From Podarcis muralis (taxonomy: Eukaryota): DNA of 64,000 nucleotides. The DNA lies in the NCBI RefSeq assembly GCF_964188315.1, contig NC_135667.1:21142001-21206000 (forward strand), written 5' to 3'. The notes beneath the pieces were generated by a model. It was given only the letters and a program-made list of their open reading frames with translations, did not search any database and had not been told where the DNA came from. How positions within the stretch are numbered: the stretch's first letter is position 1; each line of letters opens with the position of its first letter. The position numbers and the translations under genes were made by a program. Positions 990-57,236 of the stretch are shown here, piece by piece.

Positions 990-5728
<4,739 letters not shown>

Positions 5729-7469
5729 TTAAAGGAAAGTGGGCTGCTTGCACCCTTGGGCAGAGTGAGTCCCCCCCCCCGCCGCCATGCAAGGAAGGTG
5801 TACAATACATGAGTGGAATCTGAGCTTGAAATTCAACCAAACGTTACGCAACATCTGGCATTCGCTACCTTCCCCTTTGACTGGAGTTGGCAGGGATTTC
5901 TGAGGCTGGGCTGAATAATAGGATCAGATAACTGCAAGGAACTGGGATTTCACTGCGAAGGAACTGAAATATCTGCTGAAGAAAAGGGAAAGTCTCACCC
6001 CCATCCTCAACCTCATTTGCCACCTGCAAGCGAAGCAATTTGTCCTCTCTCTCTGCGTCCTTTCTCGAGGGTCAGGACGGACCAGGATTTTTAAAAACAG
6101 CCTCATTATCCCATCCCTTTCTACAAGTCCTTCTGTGTTCAGTCGGTCTTTCTGCCTGGGAAATGGGTCGACGAGGATTGAAGCCTTCATGCAGGAAAAT
6201 AAGACCCAGGCTCTCGCTCCCTCTCAGCCTTGAATACTAGTCGTCCACCAGGATATTGGACGGTCTTGTTCTGCCCTCATCATCCCAGGGACACCAGGAG
6301 TCCTGCTTGCCTTGTGCCCTGACAGCTCCTCGCTCCTCCACTGCCCGCAGTCCGGAGGCAGCTCAGCTTCCGCGGGTGTCGGTTACCTTGATCTTGATGC
6401 GCTGGTGATGGTTCGGCGGCTGGCGCTGATTTGGGAGCTGAAGCGCGCCGGAATCCGGTTTGTGGGGCGTGGACCAGCAATGGGCGGAGAAGATCTCCCG
6501 GGGTGAATTATTCCGGGGTGGGACAGTGGAGAGCTGGTAGCTTTGCCGAGGTGCCGCTGAGATCAAGGCAACCCTTCTGCTTCAGCAAAGCAGAGGGAAG
6601 GGTTTTCACTGTAAAACACTAAATATATATGGCAATCTTTGATGCTGGGAATTCCTACATCCCCACCCACCCCCCAAACAAAAACGAACCCAAAGCAGTG
6701 CTGGCATTCCGACCAAGGCTTAAGGGTTGCTTTCAAGCACGGTGGCTTAACGGAGTGCTGCCTCTTTAAGAGCTTCCCAGACCCCCAAGTGCCCTCTCTT
6801 CGCTTAGCCCCAGAGAGAATAGATCCCTCTTCCAGGTGTCTGTTCGGAAGGCTGCCAAGGAGCTTATGCAACAAGCCTGTTAAGTAACCTGCCCCTTCAG
6901 AGTCACCGTTCAACAGCCAACATAGTTTGGGTTGGACTTTCCTACTCATTTCTACAGGGAAAACACTCTGCACATGCTCAGGAGGTCAACTCTGCATGTT
7001 CTCACCTATCAGTGAGGACTGAAAATGGACTCAATTTAAGATCTGCGGTTAGACAGCAGTTTAAAATGGTTTCGAGGCCCCTCCGTGTGCACACTCTCTC
7101 AGCTCACCACCACCATGTTAAGTAAGCCCACTAATGATCTCTTGATACCAGGCTTCCCAAAACAATTTGGGTAGTTTTAATTTGAGCAATGGAAGAAGCC
7201 ATTATAATGTGTTGATCTGGCTAGAGAAGCAACTTGGGTGTGCTGCAGGGGTCCTGATATGTCTCTGAAGCTGCCATGCCTGCTTGACTTCCGGCTTGCT
7301 TCCCACCTGTTCAACTTGTATATTTCGAAGCACATAGATGTCACAAGTGAGCCATAAAGTCTCCATTAGCCTCCCATTTCTGGCTCTACAAAGGTGCCAT
7401 GGGCTTTGCTGGCACTTGGAGAGTTCGTACAATGTGCTATATGTTTAGTAGTGTGCACCTGTCTCACAC

Positions 7470-27300: not shown

Positions 27301-27929
27301 GCTGGGGAAGCATCTTGCGTTGGTGGTGGTGGCGGCGGCTGCTGCACAGTTGCAGGAGGCGGAGCTCGTGGGGCCTGAGACACCTCCTCCCACTGGACTT
27401 CCCAGCGCTGAGGTTGTGGGGCTTCTTCTAGGGCCTCTGGCTCAGCGGCGGGTGGCACTTCCAAGCCCAGAAGTTCCTCCACAGTCCCAGTGCACACCAC
27501 AAGTAGGGAGTCATCTCCTTCCTCTGCTCCCACAGCCTCTCGTACCGGCCCCGTTGGATNNNNNNNNNNNNNNNNNNNNNNNNNNNNNNNNNNNNNNNNN
27601 NNNNNNNNNNNNNNNNNNNNNNNNNNNNNNNNNNNNNNNNNNNNNNNNNNNNNNNNNNNNNNNNNNNNNNNNNNNNNNNNNNNNNNNNNNNNNNNNNNNN
27701 CTTCCACCACGACTTCCGCCTCCGCTTCCGGTTCCTCCTCCTCTTCTTCCTCCTCCTCCTCAATCGTGATTTCCGGATAGACCCCTTGCTCAAGCAGCAC
27801 TTTAAAATGGAGATCCAGCTCTCCCGATCCCTGCTCGGGCTCCATTTTGTCTTCCAAAAGGTAGGCCGACTTCTCCCAGTTGTAGACGGAGGTCTGGCCA
27901 CCGAGGCCCCAAGTCTCACACGCAAACAT
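17021..27929 (-). CDS. SCAN-domain C2H2 zinc-finger protein (ZSCAN/ZKSCAN-like), 4 coding exons, 11 intact fingers
   Basis: Exons 27929-26808 (gccATG; SCAN ARRRFRQFCY..GPRKACGQLWELCNHWLKP..TKEQILDVLILEQFL; contains N gap), 20967-20841 (127 nt, degenerate KRAB-A-like LFEEVVVNFP), 19026-18973 (54 nt), 18345-17021 (C2H2 array, TGEKR/TGERP linkers). All GT-AG, phases 0/1/1 compatible. Confidence 0.9.
18527..18751. mobile_element. Tigger-like MITE (degenerate)
   Basis: Termini CCGTCATACCTTGG / CCAAGGTACAGCGG; body similar to 21305-21554. Confidence 0.75.
19329..19572 (+). mobile_element. tRNA-derived SINE (Squam2-like)
   Basis: agccagcttggtgtagtggttaagag head, ctgggtgaccttgggccagtcac core, (CTT)n tail. 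Confidence 0.8.
19575..19790 (-). mobile_element. tRNA-derived SINE (Squam2-like), inverted partner of the previous copy
   Basis: Reverse complement of 19329-19540 (gtgactggcccaaggtcacccagcagctgcatgtggaggagcgg...actacaccacactggct). Confidence 0.8.
20675..20810. mobile_element. hAT MITE, palindromic
   Basis: TIR CAGGCTTCCTCA / TGAGGAAGCCTG; perfect 8-bp TSD AGCTAAGC at 20667-20674 and 20811-20818. Confidence 0.92.
21305..21554. mobile_element. Tigger-like MITE
   Basis: TA-CAGTCGTACCTT...AAGGTACGACTG-TA. Confidence 0.9.
21827..21874. repeat. (AAT)n microsatellite
   Basis: Direct reading of tandem aat units. Confidence 0.95.
23372..23712. mobile_element. Tigger-like MITE
   Basis: TA-CAGTGGTGCCTCGCAAGACG...CGTCTTGCGAGGTACCACTG-TA. 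Confidence 0.92.
25093..25445 (-). mobile_element. Sauria SINE (Squam1-type)
   Basis: Reverse-complement body with (AAAGGT)n tail; TSD AGTATGCAAATA at 25081-25092 and 25446-25457. Confidence 0.93.
27560..27700. other. Assembly gap (141 N) inside the SCAN-coding exon
   Basis: Run of n flanked by low-complexity Glu-rich coding sequence. Confidence 1.
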
Positions 27930-47699: not shown

Positions 47700-47960
47700 A
47701 CTCCAGGAGAGCAGTGAGAGAGCTAAAAGCAGGATTGTTGCGGGGGGGGGGGGCATTGGGGATTCAAGGGGGCAGCATGAAGACGGCTCCTCTGCAGTGG
47801 GCGCTGGTTGCTTCTGTGGTCTAGAGGTACTTAGAGGTCAGCACCGGACAGCGATGAGGCCGTCTGCATGCTTTGGTTCAGCATCTGTGAGAGAGTGGTG
47901 GAAGCAAGGAGAGTTAGGCAGCAAAGCAGAAGCAGCAAAGGAGGGACGGAGGTGTGGGAA
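47700..47960 (-). pseudogene. Relic third copy of the globin-derived gene (intron 2 remnant, exon 3, 3' UTR)
   Basis: Acceptor ctctcacag then 47884-47821 ATGCTGAACCAA...GTG CTG ACC TCT AAG TAC CTC TAG (VLTSKYL*), out of frame with the acceptor; 3' flank ctccaggagagcagtgagagagctaaaagcagg matches 50042-50072; polyA signal mutated. Confidence 0.8.
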
Positions 47961-48400: not shown

Positions 48401-48789
48401 CCTGTTGTTGTGCAAACCACAGGGGTGTGGGGCCTCCCCCCAAGCCTTGTGGCCCCTCCCACGTCTGTGTCGGCAGCGCTAGTTGGGCTCAGTAAGCAAC
48501 TACCCTCTTGGCTGAAGAGGTAGAAAAAACAATCTGGGCAGCTTGGCAGGTCCCAAGCCCAGACCAGGAGGCTCTTGCTTCAAGGCCCCTTCCCTCAGGC
48601 CATGAGCCCGCTGCTTGGAAGGGCCCATCATTGCAAGGATATCTGCAGCTCCTCCTAACTGACTGATATTCCAAGGACGAAATGAGAGTAGCAGCACTTC
48701 ACCTCTGGCGACTGAGCAACCTCTGATATCGTTCCTTGTTCTCTTCAGCCAGTTTTGGCCAAACCACACTGTGTTTCTTTTCTGATGCA

Positions 48790-48860
48790 GGTTCTTCTGA
48801 CACTGAGGGGACATGGGACTCCCTGGCGGATGTGGGAAGCGAGACCCTTCTGCAGGGGCA
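48790..48860 (+). pseudogene. Orphan copy of SCAN-ZNF micro-exon 3 with a 19-nt deletion (second copy at ~53251-53321)
   Basis: 48730-49060 matches 44080-44440 including acceptor tttcttttctgatgcag and GSSDTEGTWDSL; no SCAN or finger exons accompany it in the unit. Confidence 0.8.
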
Positions 48861-49305
48861 GGTGGGCAGGGTACTAGATTGCTCTGATCTACAAGAGACA
48901 TCCAAATCCTTACAGGGGAAGCTGACACCTTCAGAATTATGCAGCACAAAGGTTTTACTTTTGTCATGAACTTGCTAGGCAGTCTTAGGCAAGCCACTCT
49001 CCATTTCAGCTCCTTTCTCCCATGTTCAACATGAGCAAAATAATGTTCGCATTCCTGCATTGTGGAGGTTGGACTGGGTGCTCTTATTCAGTTTGTTAGC
49101 CTCTTTTGTCCACCATGTTGTCTCCATTGCAGCGGTTCTATGAGGTAGCAAGATGGCTGCCATTGCCACCTCCTATTTCCATAATAATTAATTTTTGTAC
49201 CTCTTCCAACTGACTGGGTTGTTCCAGCTACTCTGGGTGACTTACTAAAGAATTATTGGGCAGAGCCCATGACTGTTCGAGTGTTATAGTAGTGTTTTGA
49301 ATGTA

Positions 49306-49455
49306 CAGTCGTACCTTGGTTTTCAAACAGCTTATTCCTCAAATGTTTTGGTTCCCGAACATTGCAAATCTGGAAGTGAATGTTCCGGTTTCCAAACGTT
49401 TTGGAAGTTGAACGGATTCTGGAATGGATTCCATTCGACTTCCAAGATACGACTG
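49306..49455. mobile_element. Tigger-like MITE (duplicated at 53766-53915)
   Basis: TA-CAGTCGTACCTTGG...CCAAGATACGACTG termini. Confidence 0.85.
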
Positions 49456-49879
49456 TGTAGAGCCGGTGTGGTGAAGTTGGTGGTGTGTGGTTTGAAGACA
49501 TTTGGAAATAATAGAGAAAATGCAGCAAAAAAATAAGACTATCTCCTGGCCAGCCAGAAAATGGGAAGCCCCATTAAATTAATCAATATGAAATGTTTAA
49601 TTGGATTGTTTTTATTTTTTTTATTTTGGATATGACATGGCAAGATTTGAGATGTTATTAATGAAAAAATAATAAAAATTTATTTATTTATTTATTTATT
49701 TTAAAAGAGGCCAATGAGAATCCTTGTCTCCTCTTCTGGTGAGCCTCCAGCTTGGGTCCTGGGCATTGCCGGTTAAAGGGAAGCCCTTCTCAAGAAGCAA
49801 AACGGTGTTTCCTGCCATCTTGGGCCCCTCCAGGGCTGCAAGCTCCCCTGCTATAGAGAGATTCTCCCGTGGAAGGGGC

Positions 49880-49995
49880 ATTCCCAGGAGGTGGTGGACT
49901 CTCCTTCCTTGGAAGGTTTTAAGCAGAGGATGGATGGCCGTCTGCCAGGGACGATTGCGGGGGTTGGTCTAGATGACTCTTGAGTGTCCTTCCCA
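49880..49995 (+). mobile_element. CR1 3'-end fragment (also ~54340-54455 and, more degraded, ~47405-47665)
   Basis: ggactctccttccttggaaggttttaagcagagg...ctagatgac...cccaactcc is the CR1-type 3' terminus. Confidence 0.7.
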
Positions 49996-50072
49996 ACTCC
50001 ATTATTTGCCAGCACCCCCCACCCCGTTCAGCCTAAATAGACTCCGGGAGAGCAGTGAGAGCTAAAAGCAGG

Positions 50073-50078
50073 TTTATT
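50073..50078 (-). terminator. Polyadenylation signal AATAAA of globin-derived gene copy 1 (copy 2: 54533-54538)
   Basis: tttatt on the plus strand ~90 nt beyond the stop codon. Confidence 0.75.
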
Positions 50079-50165
50079 GAGGGCGGGGGGGGGGGGACGT
50101 GGTCGAGGCTGCCACGTCCAGGCGGCACTTCTGCGGAGGGCGCCGGCTCCTTCTCTGGCCTAGCG

Positions 50166-50699
50166 TTATATGGAGATCAGCCCGTTGAGGATGAGCATAG
50201 CCTGGCAGAAGATGTTCACTTCCTCCTGGGTGTCTTGGTTCGGCAGCTGTGGGAGAGGCGAAGGCGGGGGAGCGTTAGAGAGGACGGAGCGGCGCGAAGG
50301 GGCGAAGGAGGGACCCACGTCTGGAGCCCCCGCCCGACGGGGAGGGAGAGAGACTCACCCTGGAGTTGACGGGGTCCGCGAGCAGGTTCTGGGTGGGCAG
50401 GGCGCTAGGGTTGTCGAAGGCGCTGCCGAATGAGTTCACTATGATGCTGCAGATTATCTTGGAGCTGTACTCCCCCAAGGTGACGATTCTAGGGGAGGAG
50501 GGGGAGAAGAAGGTCAGCTTGCGGGAAACGAGAGTAAAGAGGAGAAGGGCCGGGCCATGGCATCGCCACCGGGAGAGGGTCCCTGCCCGACGGGGCGGGC
50601 TTACCTGGGCACAGTCCGGGCGCCGATGTCTGCGGAACGGGACGGGATCTCAGCCCAAACGGGCTGCACGTGGCTCTGGTTGACTCCGCTCAGCGCCAT
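50166..50699 (-). CDS. Alpha-globin-derived heme-less mini-protein, copy 1 (101 aa, 3 exons)
   Basis: Exons 50699-50605 (95 nt), 50488-50359 (130 nt), 50246-50166 (81 nt); GT-AG introns of 116 and 112 nt, phases 2 and 0 as in globins. MALSGVNQSHVQPVWAEIPSRSADIGARTVPR/IVTLGEYSSKIICSIIVNSFGSAFDNPSALPTQNLLADPVNSR/LPNQDTQEEVNIFCQAMLILNGLISI*. Confidence 0.8.
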
Positions 50700-50742
50700 C
50701 CTGCCAGCTCAACCTCTTGGTGCCGTCGGAGCAGCGGCAGCC

Positions 50743-50780
50743 CTTTTATCACCGCCCGCCCTGCCCCCCGGGTGGCGTCT
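50743..50780 (-). promoter_or_regulatory. Globin-like proximal promoter, copy 1
   Basis: Minus strand CACCC (50774-50770), GGGCGGGCGG (50761-50752), GATAAAAG (50750-50743), 44 nt upstream of ATG. Confidence 0.65.
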
Positions 50781-53700
50781 CCCTCGGCCTCTGCCAGCGC
50801 CTCCTTCCCTCCCTCGGCCTCGGCAAGGATCCGGGACGGGGCGCACGAGCCCTGGCAAGTGAGCATCCTCCTCGCAATTCCCGCTGCCTGCTGCCAGGCG
50901 GACACCGTCGAGCATCTTCGCTGGACGCTCCCTGGGCGATGATGACTCGGTAGTCCTGACACCCCCCCCCCCCCGCCCTGTGAGGTCGGCCAGTCAGTCT
51001 TCTACCCCCATTGCTGCGCGCGGCTGAGGGGCACGAGGGGAGGGGAGGGGAGGGATGGCGCCTCGCAGAAAGCCGTGCGCGGAGGTTCTCTCTCAGGTCC
51101 TCTCCTGCGGGGGGTGAGGGTGGAAACTACGACCCAAATCGAACCAAATGGGTCGCTCCTTTGCCCGCCAGGCCAGTTGCCGGCAGGACTGCAGATGCGG
51201 GAGAGAGGAAGGATCAGTCCATCCAGCTGAATGGGGGCATTTGGCCCTCGGCGTCCTCTCACCAAGGGACTCCCAGGAAACTTGGCTGGCAAGAAAGAAG
51301 GGGGGCGGGTCCTTGTGGGGATCAGGACTGGCGAAGCAGCAGGAAAGCAGAGACCGTTCTCCCCATTCCAAGTCACCCAAAAGGGGAACATATTGAGGGT
51401 GGGGCTGAGAATCTAGTTCAGTTTACTTAAAAATACGCAGGACTGAAGAGTTCATGGAAGGCCTAACAGGTTTATGGAAATCAACAAAGGAGCAGATTTC
51501 AAGCAACAACTTGGAACATGAAAAGAAAGAACAACGCTTACCCAATCTATAGTTCAGCCCATCTAATTAGTGAAGTTAAATATATGTGGGAAGCAGACTG
51601 GATTATTAGAAATATATTTTAGGTTACTAAACTGCAGCCCAGTTCCAAACTGACCATTTCCTACCCACCCTGAAATGAGAAAGAAGAATTTTGTTTAATT
51701 GCTTATTTGTTAATTAGGATTCATGGGGAAATGGTCCAGTTTGGAACTGAGCCCCAGTTCAGTAGCCTAGAAATTACTATGTGTTGAGAGTGCAAAGTTG
51801 GAGGCAGCAGGGAGCCCTCAAGACTGTCCTGGAAGGAACTCCAGGGGATGAGCAACCAGGGATGATAAATTGACACCTTCGCCACAGACTGCAAGCAATG
51901 GTTCATTTCCTGTGTTCACCAAAGTGGGTGGTCATTATAGGTGTCCAAGGTGGGTCACCTACACATACATTCCTATCCACACCAAACCAAATGGTTATTA
52001 GAGGTCATTATGCAGGCCATTATGCAGGGACCTGCCCATGTATTCCTATCCAAACACAGACATACACTTTTGGTGCACACTTATGAGTGGCAGAGTGGGT
52101 GTAGGCCACATCTATGAGAAGGTGGAAGTGTGAGTGGCAGCAGAATTCCCCGGTTCAGCTAACCCAGAAGCTAAAAGAAGAGGATCGTCTGTGACCTTGC
52201 AGGCCATTTCTCCCCTTGTCCACCAAAGGCTGAGCATGGAAGCCAGGCAAGAAGACACCTGCAGAAGAGTCTCTTGGGAGGGCAGCTGTGGGGGTAATGT
52301 GGGGCTGGTGCTCTATGCAGGCTGGCCATACTGGGGGAGGGAAGGAGGAGGAGAAGGCGTGAGCACTTTGGGGCATCACAATTTTGCATGACACCCCCCC
52401 CCCAAGAAGACAGGATGTCCCAGACTGTTGACGGGTATGTGCCAGCCACAGACCCTCTAGGTGAGTTTTGCAGACTACCAATTGGGAACCGCTGATCTAC
52501 AGTATTCCAAGTGTTTTTGCACCACAGATTTGTAGAATGGCATTCTGGGAGCCACAGTCTTGTTTTTAAATGCATGTTCAAGTGACCCCCACCCAGCACG
52601 GAATGGGCCTTTTTCACAGCTGCAGAACACAGGGTTGGCCTTTTCATCCAGCTCTCCACTACCATCTTAAGGTCTCGATCCAGATTGGCCACTGCCAGTT
52701 CAGACCCAGGAATATATATGTGTGGAGTTAAGATATGTCTTTTTGCATCACAGAATCATAGAGTTGGAAGGGATCCCGAGGCTCATCGAGCCCAACCCCC
52801 AGCAAAGAAGGAATCTCAGCTGAAGAATCCCAGACAGATGGCCAGCCAACCTCTGCTTTAAAGTCTTGTTGTGCAAACCACAGGGGTGTGGGGCCTCCCC
52901 CCAAGTCTTGTGGCCCCTCCCACTTCTGTGTAGGCAGCGCTAGTTGGGCTCAGTAAGCAACTACCCTCTTGGCTGAAGAGGTAGAAAAAACAATCTGGGC
53001 AGCTTGGCAGGTCCCAAGCCCAGACCAGGAGGCTCTTGCTTCAAGGACCCTTCCCTCAGGCCATGAGCCCGCTGCTTGGAAGGGCGCATCATTGCAAGGA
53101 AATATGCAGCTCCTCCTAACTGACTGATATTCCAAGGACCAAATGAGAGTAGCAGCACTTCACCTCTGGTGACTGAACAACCTCTGATATCGTTCCTTGT
53201 TCTCTTCAGCCAGTTTTGGCCAAACCACACTGTGTTTCTTTTCTGATGCAGGTTCTTCTGACACAGAGGGGACATGGGACTCCCTGGAAGACATGGGAAG
53301 CGAGAGCCTTCTGCAGGGGCAGGTGGGCAGGGTCCTAGACTGCTCTGATCTACAAGAGACATCCAAATCCTTACAGGGGAAGCTGACACCTTCAGAATTA
53401 TGCAGCACAAAGGTTTTACTTTTGTCATGAACTTGCTAGGCAGTCTTAGGCAAGCCACTCTCCATTTCAGCTCCTTTCTCCCATGTTCAACATGAGCAAA
53501 ATAATGTTCGCATTCCTGCATTGTGGAGGTTGGACTGGGTGCTCTTATTCAGTTAGTTAGCCTCTTTTGTCCACCATGTTGTCTCCATTGCAGTGGTTCT
53601 ATGAGGTAGCAAGATGGCTGCCTTGCCACCTCCTATTTCCATAATAATTAATTTTTGTACCTCTTCCAACTGACTGGGTTGTTCCAGCTACTCTGGGTGA

Positions 53701-54629
53701 CTTACTAAAGAATTATTGGGCAGAGCCCATGACTGTTCGAGTGTTATAGTAGTGTTTTGAATGTACAGTCGTACCTTGGTTTTCAAACAGCTTATTCCTC
53801 AAATGTTTTGGTTCCCGAACATTGCAAATCTGGAAGTGAATGTTCCGGTTTCCAAACGTTTTGGAAGTTGAACGGATTCTGGAATGGATTCCATTCGACT
53901 TCCAAGATACGACTGTGTAGAGCCGGTGTGGTGAAGTTGGTGGTGTGTGGTTTGAAGACATTTGGAAATAATAGAGAAAATGCAGCAAAAAAAATAAGAC
54001 TATCTCCTGGCCAGCCAGAAAATGGGAAGCCCCATTAAATTAATCAATATGAAATGTTTAATTGGATTGTTTTTATTTTTTTTATTTTGGATATGACATG
54101 GCAAGATTTGAGATGTTATTAATGAAAAAATAATAAAAATTTATTTATTTATTTATTTATTTTAAAAGAGGCCAATGAGAATCCTTGTCTCCTCTTCTGG
54201 TGAGCCTCCAGCTTGGGTCCTGGGCATTGCCGGTTAAAGGGAAGCCCTTCTCAAGAAGCAAAACGGTGTTTCCTGCCATCTTGGGCCCCTCCAGGGCTGC
54301 AAGCTCCCCTGCTATAGAGATATTCCCCCGTGGAAGGGGCATTCCCGGGAGGTGGTGGACTCTCCTTCCTTGGAAGGTTTTAAGCAGAGGATGGATGGCC
54401 GTCTGCCAGGGACGATTGCGGGGGTTGGTCTAGATGACTCTTGAGTGTCCCTCCCAACTCCATTATTTACCCGCACCCCCCACCCCGTTCAGCCTAAATA
54501 GACTCCGGGAGAGCAGTGAGAGCTAAAAGCAGGTTTATTGAGGGCGGGGGGGGGGGGACGTGGTCGAGGCTGCCACGTCCAGGCGGCACTTCTGCGGAGG
54601 GCGCCGGCTCCTTCTCTGGCCTAGCGGTA

Positions 54630-55157
54630 TTAGAGCACCGCGTTGACGATGAGAGCAGCCTGGCGGAAGATGCTCGCTTCCTCCTCGGTGTCTTGGTTCG
54701 GCAGCTGCGGGAGAGGCGAAGGCGGGGGAGCGTTAGAGAGAACGGAGCGGCGCGAAGGGGCGAAGGAGGGACCCACGTCTGGAGCCCCCGCCCGACGGGG
54801 AGGGAGAGAGACTCACCCTGGAGTTGACGGGGTCCGCCAGCAGGTTCTGGGTGGGCAGGGCGCTAGGGTTGTCGAAGGCGCTGCCGAATGAGTTCACTAT
54901 GATGCTGCAGATTATCTTGGAGCTGTACTCCCCCAAGGTGACGATTCTAGGGGAGGAGGGGGAGAAGAAGGTCAGCTTGCGGGAAACGAGAGTAAAGAGG
55001 AGACGGGCCGGGCCATGGCCTCGCCACCGGGAGAGGGTCCCTGCCCGACGGGGCGGGCTTACCTGGGCACAGTCCGGGCGCCGATGTCTGCGGAACGGGA
55101 CGGGATCTCGGCCCAAACGGGCTGCACGTGGCTCTGGTTGACTCCGCTCAGCGCCAT
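54630..55157 (-). CDS. Alpha-globin-derived heme-less mini-protein, copy 2 (99 aa, 3 exons)
   Basis: Exons 55157-55063 (95 nt), 54946-54817 (130 nt), 54704-54630 (75 nt). Exons 1-2 encode the same protein as copy 1; exon 3 is LPNQDTEEEASIFRQAALIVNAVL*, followed by TAC CGC TAG (YR*). Confidence 0.8.
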
Positions 55158-55200
55158 CCTGCCAGCTCAACCTCTTGGTGCCGTCGGAGCAGGGGCAGCA

Positions 55201-55238
55201 CTTTTATCACCGCCCGCCCTGCCCCCCGGGTGGCGTCT
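55201..55238 (-). promoter_or_regulatory. Globin-like proximal promoter, copy 2
   Basis: GATAAAAG (55208-55201), GC box and CACCC at the same spacing as copy 1. Confidence 0.65.
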
Positions 55239-57236
55239 CCCTCGGCCTCTGCCAGCGCCTCCTTCCCTCCCTCGGCCTCGGCAAGGATCCGGGACGGGGC
55301 GCACGAGCCCTGGCAAGTGAGCATCCTCCTCGAAATTCCCGCTGCCTGCTGCCAGGCGGACACCGTCGAGCATCTTCGCTGGACGCTCCCTGGGCGATGA
55401 TGACTCGGTAGTCCTGACACCCCCCCCCCCGCCCTGTGAGGTCGGCCAGTCAGTCTTCTACCCCCATTGCTGCGCACGGCTGAGGGGCACGAGGGGAGGG
55501 GAGGGGAGGGATGGCGCCTCGCAGAAAGCCGTGCGCGGAGGTTCTCTCTCAGGTCCTCTCCTGCGGGGGGTGAGGGTGGAAACTACGACCCAAATCGAAC
55601 CAAATGGGTCGCTCCTTTGCCCGCCAGGCCAGTTGCCGCCAGGACTGCAGATGCGGGAGAGAGGAAGGATCAGTCCATCCAGCTGAATGGGGGCATTTGG
55701 CCCTCGGCGTCCTCTCCCCAAGGGACTCACAGAAAACTTGGCTGGCAAGAAAGAAGGGGGGCGGGTTCTTGTGGGGGATCAGGACTGGCGAAGCAGCAGG
55801 AAAGCAGAGACGGTTCTCCCCATTCCAAGCCACCCAAAAGGGGAACATATTGAGGGTGGGGCTGAGAATCTAGTTCAGTTTACTTAAAAATACGCAGGAC
55901 TGAAGAGTTCATGCAAGGCCTAACAGGTTTATGGAAATCAACAAAGGAGCAGATTTCAAGCAACAACTTGGAACATGAAAAGAAAGAACAACGCTTACCC
56001 AATCTATAGTTCAGCCCATCTAATTAGTGAGGTTAAATATATGTGGGAAGCAGACTGGATTATTAGAAATAATTTTAGGTTACTAAACTGCAGCCCAGTT
56101 CCAAACTGACCATTTCCTACCCACCCTGAAATGAGAAAGAAAAATTTTGTTTAATTGCTTATTTGTTAATTAGGATTCATGGGGAAATGGTCCAGTTTGG
56201 AACTGAGCCCCAGTTCAGTAGCCTAGAAATTACTATGTGTTGAGAGTGCAAAGTTGGAGGCAGCAGGGATGCCCTCAAGACTGTCCTGGAAGGAACTCCA
56301 GGGGATGAGCAACCAGGGATGATAAATTGACACCTTCGCCACAGACTGCAAGCAATGGTTCATTTCCTGTGTTCACCAAAGTGGGTGGTCATTATAGGTC
56401 TCCAAGGTGGGTCACCTACACATACATTCCTATCCACACCAAACCAAATGGTTATTAGAGGTCATTATGCAGGCCATTCTGCAGGGACCTGCCCATGTAT
56501 TCCTATCCAAACACAGACATACACTTTTGGTGCACACTTATGAGTGGCAGAGTGGGTGTAGGCCACATCTATGAGAAGGTGGAAGTGTGAGTGGCAGCAG
56601 AATTCCCCGGTTCAGCTAACCCAGAAGCTAAAAGAAGAGGATCGTCTGTGACCTTGCAGGCCATTTCTCCCCTTGTCCACCAAAGGCTGAGCATGGAAGC
56701 CAGGCAAGAAGACACCTGCAGAAGAGTCTCTTGGGAGGGCAGCTGTGGGGGTAATGTGGGGCTGGTGCTCTATGCAGGCTGGCCATACTGGGGGAGGGAA
56801 GGAGGAGGAGAAGGCGTGAGCACTTTGGGGCATCACAATTTTGCATGACACCCCCCCCCAAGAAGACAGGATGTCCCAGACTGTTGACGGGTATGTGCCA
56901 GCCACAGACCCTCTAGGTGAGTTTTGCAGACTACCAATTGGGAACCGCTGATCTACAGTATTCCAAGTGTTTTTGCACCACAGATTTGTAGAATGGCATT
57001 CTGGGAGCCACAGTCTTGTTTTTAAATGCATGTTCAAGTGACCCCCACCCAGCACGGAATGGGCCTTTTTCACAGCTGCAGAACACAGGGTTGGCCTTTT
57101 CATCCAGCTCTCCACTACCATCTTAAGGTCTCGATCCAGATTGGCCACTGCCAGTTCAGACCCAGGAATATATATGTGTGGAGTTAAGATATGTCTTTTT
57201 GCATCACAGAATCATAGAGTTGGAAGGGATCCCGAG

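Follow-up and report, generated by a model that had tools for sequence, protein, structure and literature searches.

Globins are the textbook case of function conserved after gene duplication. Accelerated evolution is known from toxin and defence families such as snake venom PLA2, three-finger toxins, conotoxins and mammalian defensins. A previous report documented gene conversion among lizard globin genes (HBB) (PMC12504858). In this study, we analysed a tandem array of small genes of alpha-globin origin on chromosome C13 of Podarcis muralis, and compared two adjacent copies, genes A and B, which differ most densely in exon 3. A literature search found no description of an alpha-globin-derived gene family on C13.

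The window, the whole 64,000-nucleotide stretch of DNA analysed (C13:21142001-21206000), contains two directly adjacent tandem units of 4.37 kb each. Unit A lies at 48405-52780 (self-BLAST against unit B) and unit B at 52866-57236 (self-BLAST and the list of differences from unit A). Self-comparison over 4379 aligned columns gave 98.4% identity, and 72 of these columns differed in a global alignment of both units. Outside exon 3, the divergence per 100 bp was uneven along the unit and ranged between 0 and about 4%. Each unit carries one minus-strand gene of three exons with canonical GT/AG splice sites; the gene A product has 101 amino acids and the gene B product 99. A 141-N run at 27560-27700 of the window is an assembly gap or a masked stretch.

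In gene A, exon 1 was located at 50605-50699 (ATG at 50699-50697, 95 nt, phase-2 donor) and exon 2 at 50359-50488 (130 nt, placed by its GT/AG sites and by a spliced contig of run X15 ending at 50359). The coding part of its exon 3 lies at 50166-50246 and consists of 26 codons plus TAA, encoding the peptide LPNQDTQEEVNIFCQAMLILNGLISI. In gene B, exon 1 lies at 55063-55157, where a contig of run X15 spans 55217-55063 and then joins exon 2. Exon 2 of gene B lies at 54817-54946 (130 nt), and its 5' 86 nt form a hypervariable part within the paralog family. The coding part of exon 3 at 54630-54704 has 24 codons plus TAA and encodes LPNQDTEEEASIFRQAALIVNAVL. All these exons are on the minus strand, as are the polyadenylation signal AATAAA of gene B (54534-54539), which is conserved in 13 of 13 paralogs, and its ATAAAA box (55202-55207), about 45 nt upstream of the ATG. 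Read-through from exon to exon across the introns met a stop in each in-frame intron.

A search of the genome (1.52 Gb) with gene B found 13 gene copies within about 110 kb of this one chromosome (C13:21.19-21.30 Mb). Nine of them (A-H and J) are intact, with open frames of 99-108 amino acids. The mean pairwise difference among these nine was 4-7% in the 5' flank, exon 1, the introns and the 3' UTR, 32% in the 5' part of exon 2, and 22% in exon 3. The segments at 53717-53893 and 54248-54424 had a summed contig depth of 2600-5900 in a DNA run, against about 50-100 elsewhere; they are high-copy dispersed repeats between the gene copies. A relic exon 3 was also seen on the minus strand at 47820-47886, with a ..VLTSKY-like end and a recognisable 3' UTR, and with no upstream exons.

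The same genome search gave weaker matches to true globin genes on other chromosomes. One of them, at C14:54849301-54850158, encodes a normal alpha chain, and it matched at 69-76% DNA identity in three stretches. The first comprises the promoter and exon 1, the second runs from the final part of exon 2 into intron 2, and the third is the 3' UTR. The 5' flank of gene B was 76% identical to its counterpart in a true alpha-globin gene outside C13. The alpha-globin cluster and the C13 array lie on different chromosomes. The intron phases of the small genes are 2 and 0, as in alpha-globin, and both the exon-1 peptide and the FG-corner motif (..L.AQ.L..DPVN..) aligned with the true alpha chain. At the proximal histidine (F8) site, the alpha chain reads ..DLHAQKLRVDPVNF.. 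and the array copies read ..ALPAQNLLADPVNS..; Pro stands in place of His, and the motif is LPAQNLL in the copies against LHAQKLR in the alpha chain. The region before this site is shortened and hypervariable in the copies and stands where alpha-globin has the C-E helix region. Searching the genome in six frames with the Pfam Globin model (PF00042) recovered true globins on C14, C4, C10, C9 and C2 and no C13 copy even at E<=10, and hmmscan of the separate exon peptides of A and B against Pfam returned 0 families. Gene structure, together with nucleotide homology that reaches the non-coding parts, indicates that the array genes descend from alpha-globin. By sequence, the copies have lost the haem pocket and would be globins by descent, not by function. 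Exon 3 had been described in the sequence-only reading as an H-helix-derived C-terminus. In the DNA alignment, this fits codon 17 to the end, which align with remnants of the H helix, but not codons 1-16, which are colinear with the start of alpha-globin exon 3 and belong to the G helix. Two 21-nt deletions relative to alpha-globin follow codons 1-16.

We determined where the A/B differences lie. A patch of 82 bp at 54627-54708 (minus strand) holds 13 substitutions that lie within exon 3 or next to its stop, together with a single intron site (54708) and a 3-nt indel, and is flanked by 32 bp and 154 bp without any A/B difference. In all, 16 of the 72 differing columns are concentrated here. 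No other difference cluster in the unit was as strong: an 80-column window held 16 differing columns, a number that none of 20,000 scan permutations reached (P<5e-5). With the background set at 48 substitutions per roughly 4300 bp, the Poisson P was about 1e-9. The global alignment agreed with the counts of the sequence-only reading elsewhere in the gene: one silent difference in exon 1 (50652/55110, GCT/GCC), one in exon 2 (50380/54838, CTC/CTG), about two in each intron (50546 and 50562 in intron 1, 50250 and 50283 in intron 2), and a 3' UTR identical between A and B from the stop region down to 50011/54472. Besides exon 3, the divergent patch includes the intron site 4 nt before the exon (54708).

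Among the first 24 codons of exon 3, nine differ, by 11 nt in total, and each of these encodes different amino acids in A and B, as first reported: Q/E, V/A, N/S, C/R, M/A, L/V, G/A, L/V and I/L. The 3-nt indel near the stop is likewise present, with two substitutions adjoining it (50173/54631 and 50166/54627). The label "entirely non-synonymous" is correct at the level of these codons but slightly too strong for the mutations, as ATG/GCT needs three changes and one pathway step is silent; counted by NG86, exon 3 of the pair has an Sd of 0.7 and an Nd of 10.3. Third positions changed at 1 of 24 sites, compared with 10 of 48 first and second positions. Taken on its own, the A/B pair gave a marginal bias toward replacements (P ~0.06-0.10), and significance came from adding the other paralogs. 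Six of the nine replacements are conservative hydrophobic swaps. The nine changed positions showed no helical-wheel clustering (R/n 0.31, permutation P 0.22), so we make no claim of one helix face as the target. Decay of CpG sites was considered as a source of the exon-3 changes and rejected; the derived states of B create CpGs (GCG, CGC) and do not destroy them. In the hypervariable 5' part of exon 2, 0 of 86 nt differ between A and B, which has a probability of about 6e-7 at the exon-3 rate. This points to an episodic divergence of exon 3 and is hard to fit with steady selection on both segments.

Selection was counted across the family using the nine intact paralogs, which comprise 8 distinct exon-3 sequences. 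At least 0.96, 0.71 and 0.21 mutations per site were needed at codon positions 1, 2 and 3 of exon 3, and introns plus 3' UTR needed at least 0.21, the same as position 3. Positions 1 and 2 changed 3-4.5 times faster than position 3, and only 5 of 45 inferred exon-3 mutations fell on third positions, a shortage with a binomial P of 0.0006. Over all pairs, NG86 gave a pN of 0.257 and a pS of 0.076. The codon-bootstrap Z-test on the 8 distinct sequences gave a dN of 0.337, a dS of 0.091 and a dN/dS of 3.7 (Z 3.6). For the A/B/E/H cassette type, dN/dS was 7.4 (Z 3.3), and for the type II cassettes (C, D, F and G) it was about 1.2 and not significant. The one-ratio codon model M0 fitted exon 3 better with an omega of 2.6 than with omega = 1 (LRT 5.5, P 0.019), a result to be read with the caveat that exon 3 has only 24 codons and that recombining paralogs violate the assumptions of tree-based codon models. 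These results demonstrate that the replacement rate in exon 3 of the family exceeds the silent and neutral rate. A broader sample with synonymous changes at a similar rate would have spoken against the sequence-only reading, and the nine paralogs instead showed an excess of replacements.

The 3' part of exon 2 behaved differently. At 54817-54860 (..LSALPTQNLLADPVNSR), which corresponds to the alpha-globin F helix and FG corner with the proximal histidine changed to proline, position 3 had a rate of 0.40, compared with 0.13 for positions 1 and 2. This was the only coding segment with a classical purifying pattern throughout the family. The pattern indicates that the genes are constrained and not dead or decaying.

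The array is also a mosaic. Paralogs E (C13:21238693-21239494) and J (C13:21269803-21270543) share an identical 95-bp tract over exon 3 (B positions 554-648). Outside it, their flanking intron and UTR are 9% and 12% apart, and the variable part of exon 2 is 36% apart. The tract contains 41 consecutive concordant polymorphic sites, a run that none of 5000 permutations matched (P<0.0002). It is a clean, exon-sized gene conversion of about 95 bp. E and G show the opposite arrangement, being 2% apart through exon 2 and 30% apart in exon 3. An ungapped run-length test of the GENECONV kind was significant for E-J, E-G and A-B, and not significant for the tail shared by B with E and J (P 0.34, with the indel excluded). 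Nearest neighbours assigned segment by segment conflicted among the paralogs. In the non-coding DNA, B was as close or closer to C, D or G than to A in many 100-bp windows. A second, non-coding cluster of A/B differences lies at 53265-53340 in unit B and 48804-48879 in unit A (8 differences per 80 columns, permutation P 0.002). Here B was 95-96% identical to the units at C13:21250177 and 21244457 and 93% identical to A, which suggests that this segment is another imported patch in unit B.

The sequence-only reading had offered diversifying selection and homogenising conversion as alternatives. Both are supported, and they appear to act together. We consider diversifying selection on exon 3 combined with short-tract gene conversion, in an array that evolves in concert, to be the best account of the A/B difference, with a probability of roughly 0.6. 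In this account, the tandem array would comprise at least 13 genes that derive from alpha-globin and lack a haem pocket, with A and B as its two youngest members. Recent duplication and repeated gene conversion or unequal crossing-over would keep the non-coding DNA, exon 1 and the 3' part of exon 2 of the array alike. Exon 3 would encode a C-terminal peptide of about 24 amino acids built from remnants of the G and H helices, and this peptide would be under positive, diversifying selection for amino-acid change, presumably acting on a binding or recognition function. Exon 3 would also be exchanged among the paralogs, whole or piecewise, through short conversion tracts. The A/B difference would be a local case in which each lineage acquired replacements of its own (at least 3 in A and at least 3 in B), and the reference B copy would carry a stop-proximal block of the E/J type that varies between individuals.

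Conversion might also have done all the work. A paralog or allele absent from the assembly could, once or a few times, have overwritten exon 3 in A or B, with no selection on the difference. Exon-3-sized conversion is proven within the family by the E-J tract, and the A/B patch (B positions 553-634) has almost the same boundaries as that tract. The untouched hypervariable part of exon 2 and the second patch in unit B, which looks imported too, would be expected under such an event.

The stop-proximal tail of B fits a transfer. The block at 54627-54640 (minus strand) carries the states of the E/J type, namely a GCG codon, the 3-nt deletion and AATACC, and the site-sharing table showed that among intact copies B has these in common only with E and J. 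The tail block of A is common to C, D, F and G. A contig of run X15, from another individual, has B states up to 54635 and then an A-type tail. Within a few bases it shows 54627 G>T and an inserted A and GG, and it would encode ...NAVLSI. Because these changes lie so close together, the contig is not an assembly chimera; it shows that the tail is a separable block that still varies between individuals. It represents either a segregating recombinant allele or an extra paralog, and as a recombinant allele it would imply that unsampled variants exist, as an unseen donor requires. The tail block of B is probably a recent micro-conversion tract of 6-27 bp. Which copy received it we infer and do not observe.

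The rest of exon 3 agrees less well with an unseen donor. A genome-wide search for a donor returned only the 13 known copies, with a best match of 90% for exon 3 of B (to E, whereas A was 86% identical) and 88% for that of A. The relic exon 3 at 47820-47886 was also tried as a donor and rejected as too diverged. A and B share three states that are absent from all other copies (B positions 584, 587 and 599). As these are interleaved with the differences, the A and B exons are sisters in their 5' half; had a foreign tract covered it, the shared states would be gone. In the gene region outside exon 3, 6 of 8 A/B differences are singletons, as expected after a recent duplication. Within exon 3, five differences are singletons, of which B has three and A two. 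Comparison with outgroups gave A at least 3 derived changes over 72 nt of exon 3, where 0.4 would be expected (P 0.008), so that unique derived changes are found on both lineages. Finally, conversion merely moves variation and cannot create the shortage of third-position changes across the family. We therefore regard conversion without selection, the main rival account, as unlikely, although it keeps a real share of the probability.

If A and B were instead products of an older duplication whose flanks were homogenised later, exon 3 could simply retain older, neutral divergence beyond the reach of the conversion tracts. The concerted state of the array, with B as close to C, D or G as to A in many 100-bp windows, would agree with this, and neutral sites within the patch show a small excess of divergence over the flanks (2 of about 29, compared with 1.1%). 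Older neutral divergence, however, would have made third positions as diverged as first and second ones. The 1/24 against 10/48 of the pair and the family-wide 0.21 against 0.71-0.96 both speak against it, and we hold this history to be improbable. The same observations bear on the proposal that conversion homogenised everything except exon 3. The mosaic of the array supports homogenisation, but it fails as a sole explanation, because the silent sites within exon 3 are as similar as the flanks. These sites are interleaved with fast replacement sites, which makes their separate homogenisation impossible. Escape from homogenisation is therefore insufficient, and preferential retention of amino-acid changes is needed.

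Another explanation would be that the copies are decaying like pseudogenes, under relaxed constraint or with a local burst of mutation. This would be in keeping with the missing Pfam match, the lost haem ligands and the mostly conservative replacements. Decay is also visible in the array itself. Four of 13 copies (I, K, L and M, at C13:21.26-21.30 Mb) have early stops in exon 3 (..APR*), caused in L and M by a 2-nt deletion relative to alpha-globin. K, L and M keep a fossil ..VLTSKYR coding end behind the stop, and the exon-2 acceptor of M is broken, reading GG instead of AG. Neutral decay, however, cannot exceed the intron rate, and replacement sites evolve at 4-6 times that rate. In addition, the reading frames of the nine core copies are open, their splice sites are GT/AG and their indels are in frame, purifying selection acts on the FG-corner segment, and spliced transcripts exist. 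We consider decay very improbable as an explanation of exon 3.

The transcripts were seen when contigs from four public runs were compared with window positions 50000-55300. Spliced joints occurred in small, transcriptome-sized assemblies at the predicted GT..AG sites on the gene strand. In X15, exon 1 ends at 55063 and continues directly into exon 2 (from 50488 in A coordinates). X25 shows gene A without intron 2, the 50359 end of exon 2 leading straight into exon 3 at 50246. Genes A and B are transcribed and spliced, the joints seen being exon 1 to exon 2 and exon 2 to exon 3 of A. A low-depth contig of X25 joined exon 2 (50359) to a position 3 nt upstream of the exon-3 acceptor of gene A (50249); the end of this intron is not AG, and the joint may be an assembly quirk or a variant acceptor.

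Both exon-3 versions are real, as independent public assemblies contain them. Near-identical 4.4-kb repeats are prone to mis-assembly, but an artefact of assembly or base calling, with the tandem repeat collapsed or wrongly phased, has next to no probability, given that exon 3 of B was matched exactly, with 0 other letters, in contigs of two different studies (X20, 54600-54697; X25, 54580-54692), that the exon-3 start and splice junction of A were found in further data (X25), and that an independent DNA run (X29) covered all bins without variant letters in exon 3 of A or B.

Selection acting together with short-tract conversion, our preferred account, can be extended to a bolder one. The array might form a new class of small, haem-free proteins on a globin scaffold, with exchangeable recognition cassettes at the C-terminus and in exon 2 that are diversified by selection and reshuffled by micro-conversion. 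We regard this extension as doubtful. As part of it, homology of the promoter to the alpha-globin promoter would point to putative production in red-cell precursors. If the extension were true, the pattern would be that of an arms race with parasites or protein partners, for example parasites inside lizard red cells or the partner chains of haemoglobin, and A and B would be fresh duplicates caught while acquiring different specificities.

Compared with known systems, the array is closest in structure to alpha-globin itself, with which it shares three exons, intron phases 2 and 0, a homologous promoter and UTR, and the FG corner. It differs in the length of its products (99-108 against about 142 amino acids) and in having coding parts that evolve faster than introns. 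In its mode of evolution, it resembles the toxin and defence families, in which introns and UTRs are more conserved than the exon parts for the mature protein, dN exceeds dS, and the genes stand in tandem arrays. Unlike those families, the array has no evident signal peptide, its scaffold is a globin remnant, and it has only two short hypervariable segments, one of them adjacent to a segment under purifying selection. The micro-conversion mosaics of MHC and KIR genes are similar in that short tracts shift motifs among tandem paralogs and leave relationships that conflict from segment to segment; the tracts in the array measure 95 bp (E-J) and 6-27 bp (tail block of B). The combination of dN above dS with a conversion mosaic in a tandem family is an already known kind of evolution.

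The comparison with classical globin duplicates gives the reverse picture. There, conversion homogenises the coding regions, whereas in the array it is the flanks that have been made alike, and a single coding exon has remained or become distinct. The A/B pair combines one exon-2 type and identical flanks with two exon-3 peptides. Since nearly all else is constant between the two genes, the pair is a natural experiment on what the C-terminal peptide binds, and it would show selection and short-tract conversion jointly making exon-sized cassettes. A vertebrate globin descendant that lacks the haem pocket, has expanded into an array and carries coding tips that evolve faster than its introns would be an unusual case of new function in a family known for conserving the old one.
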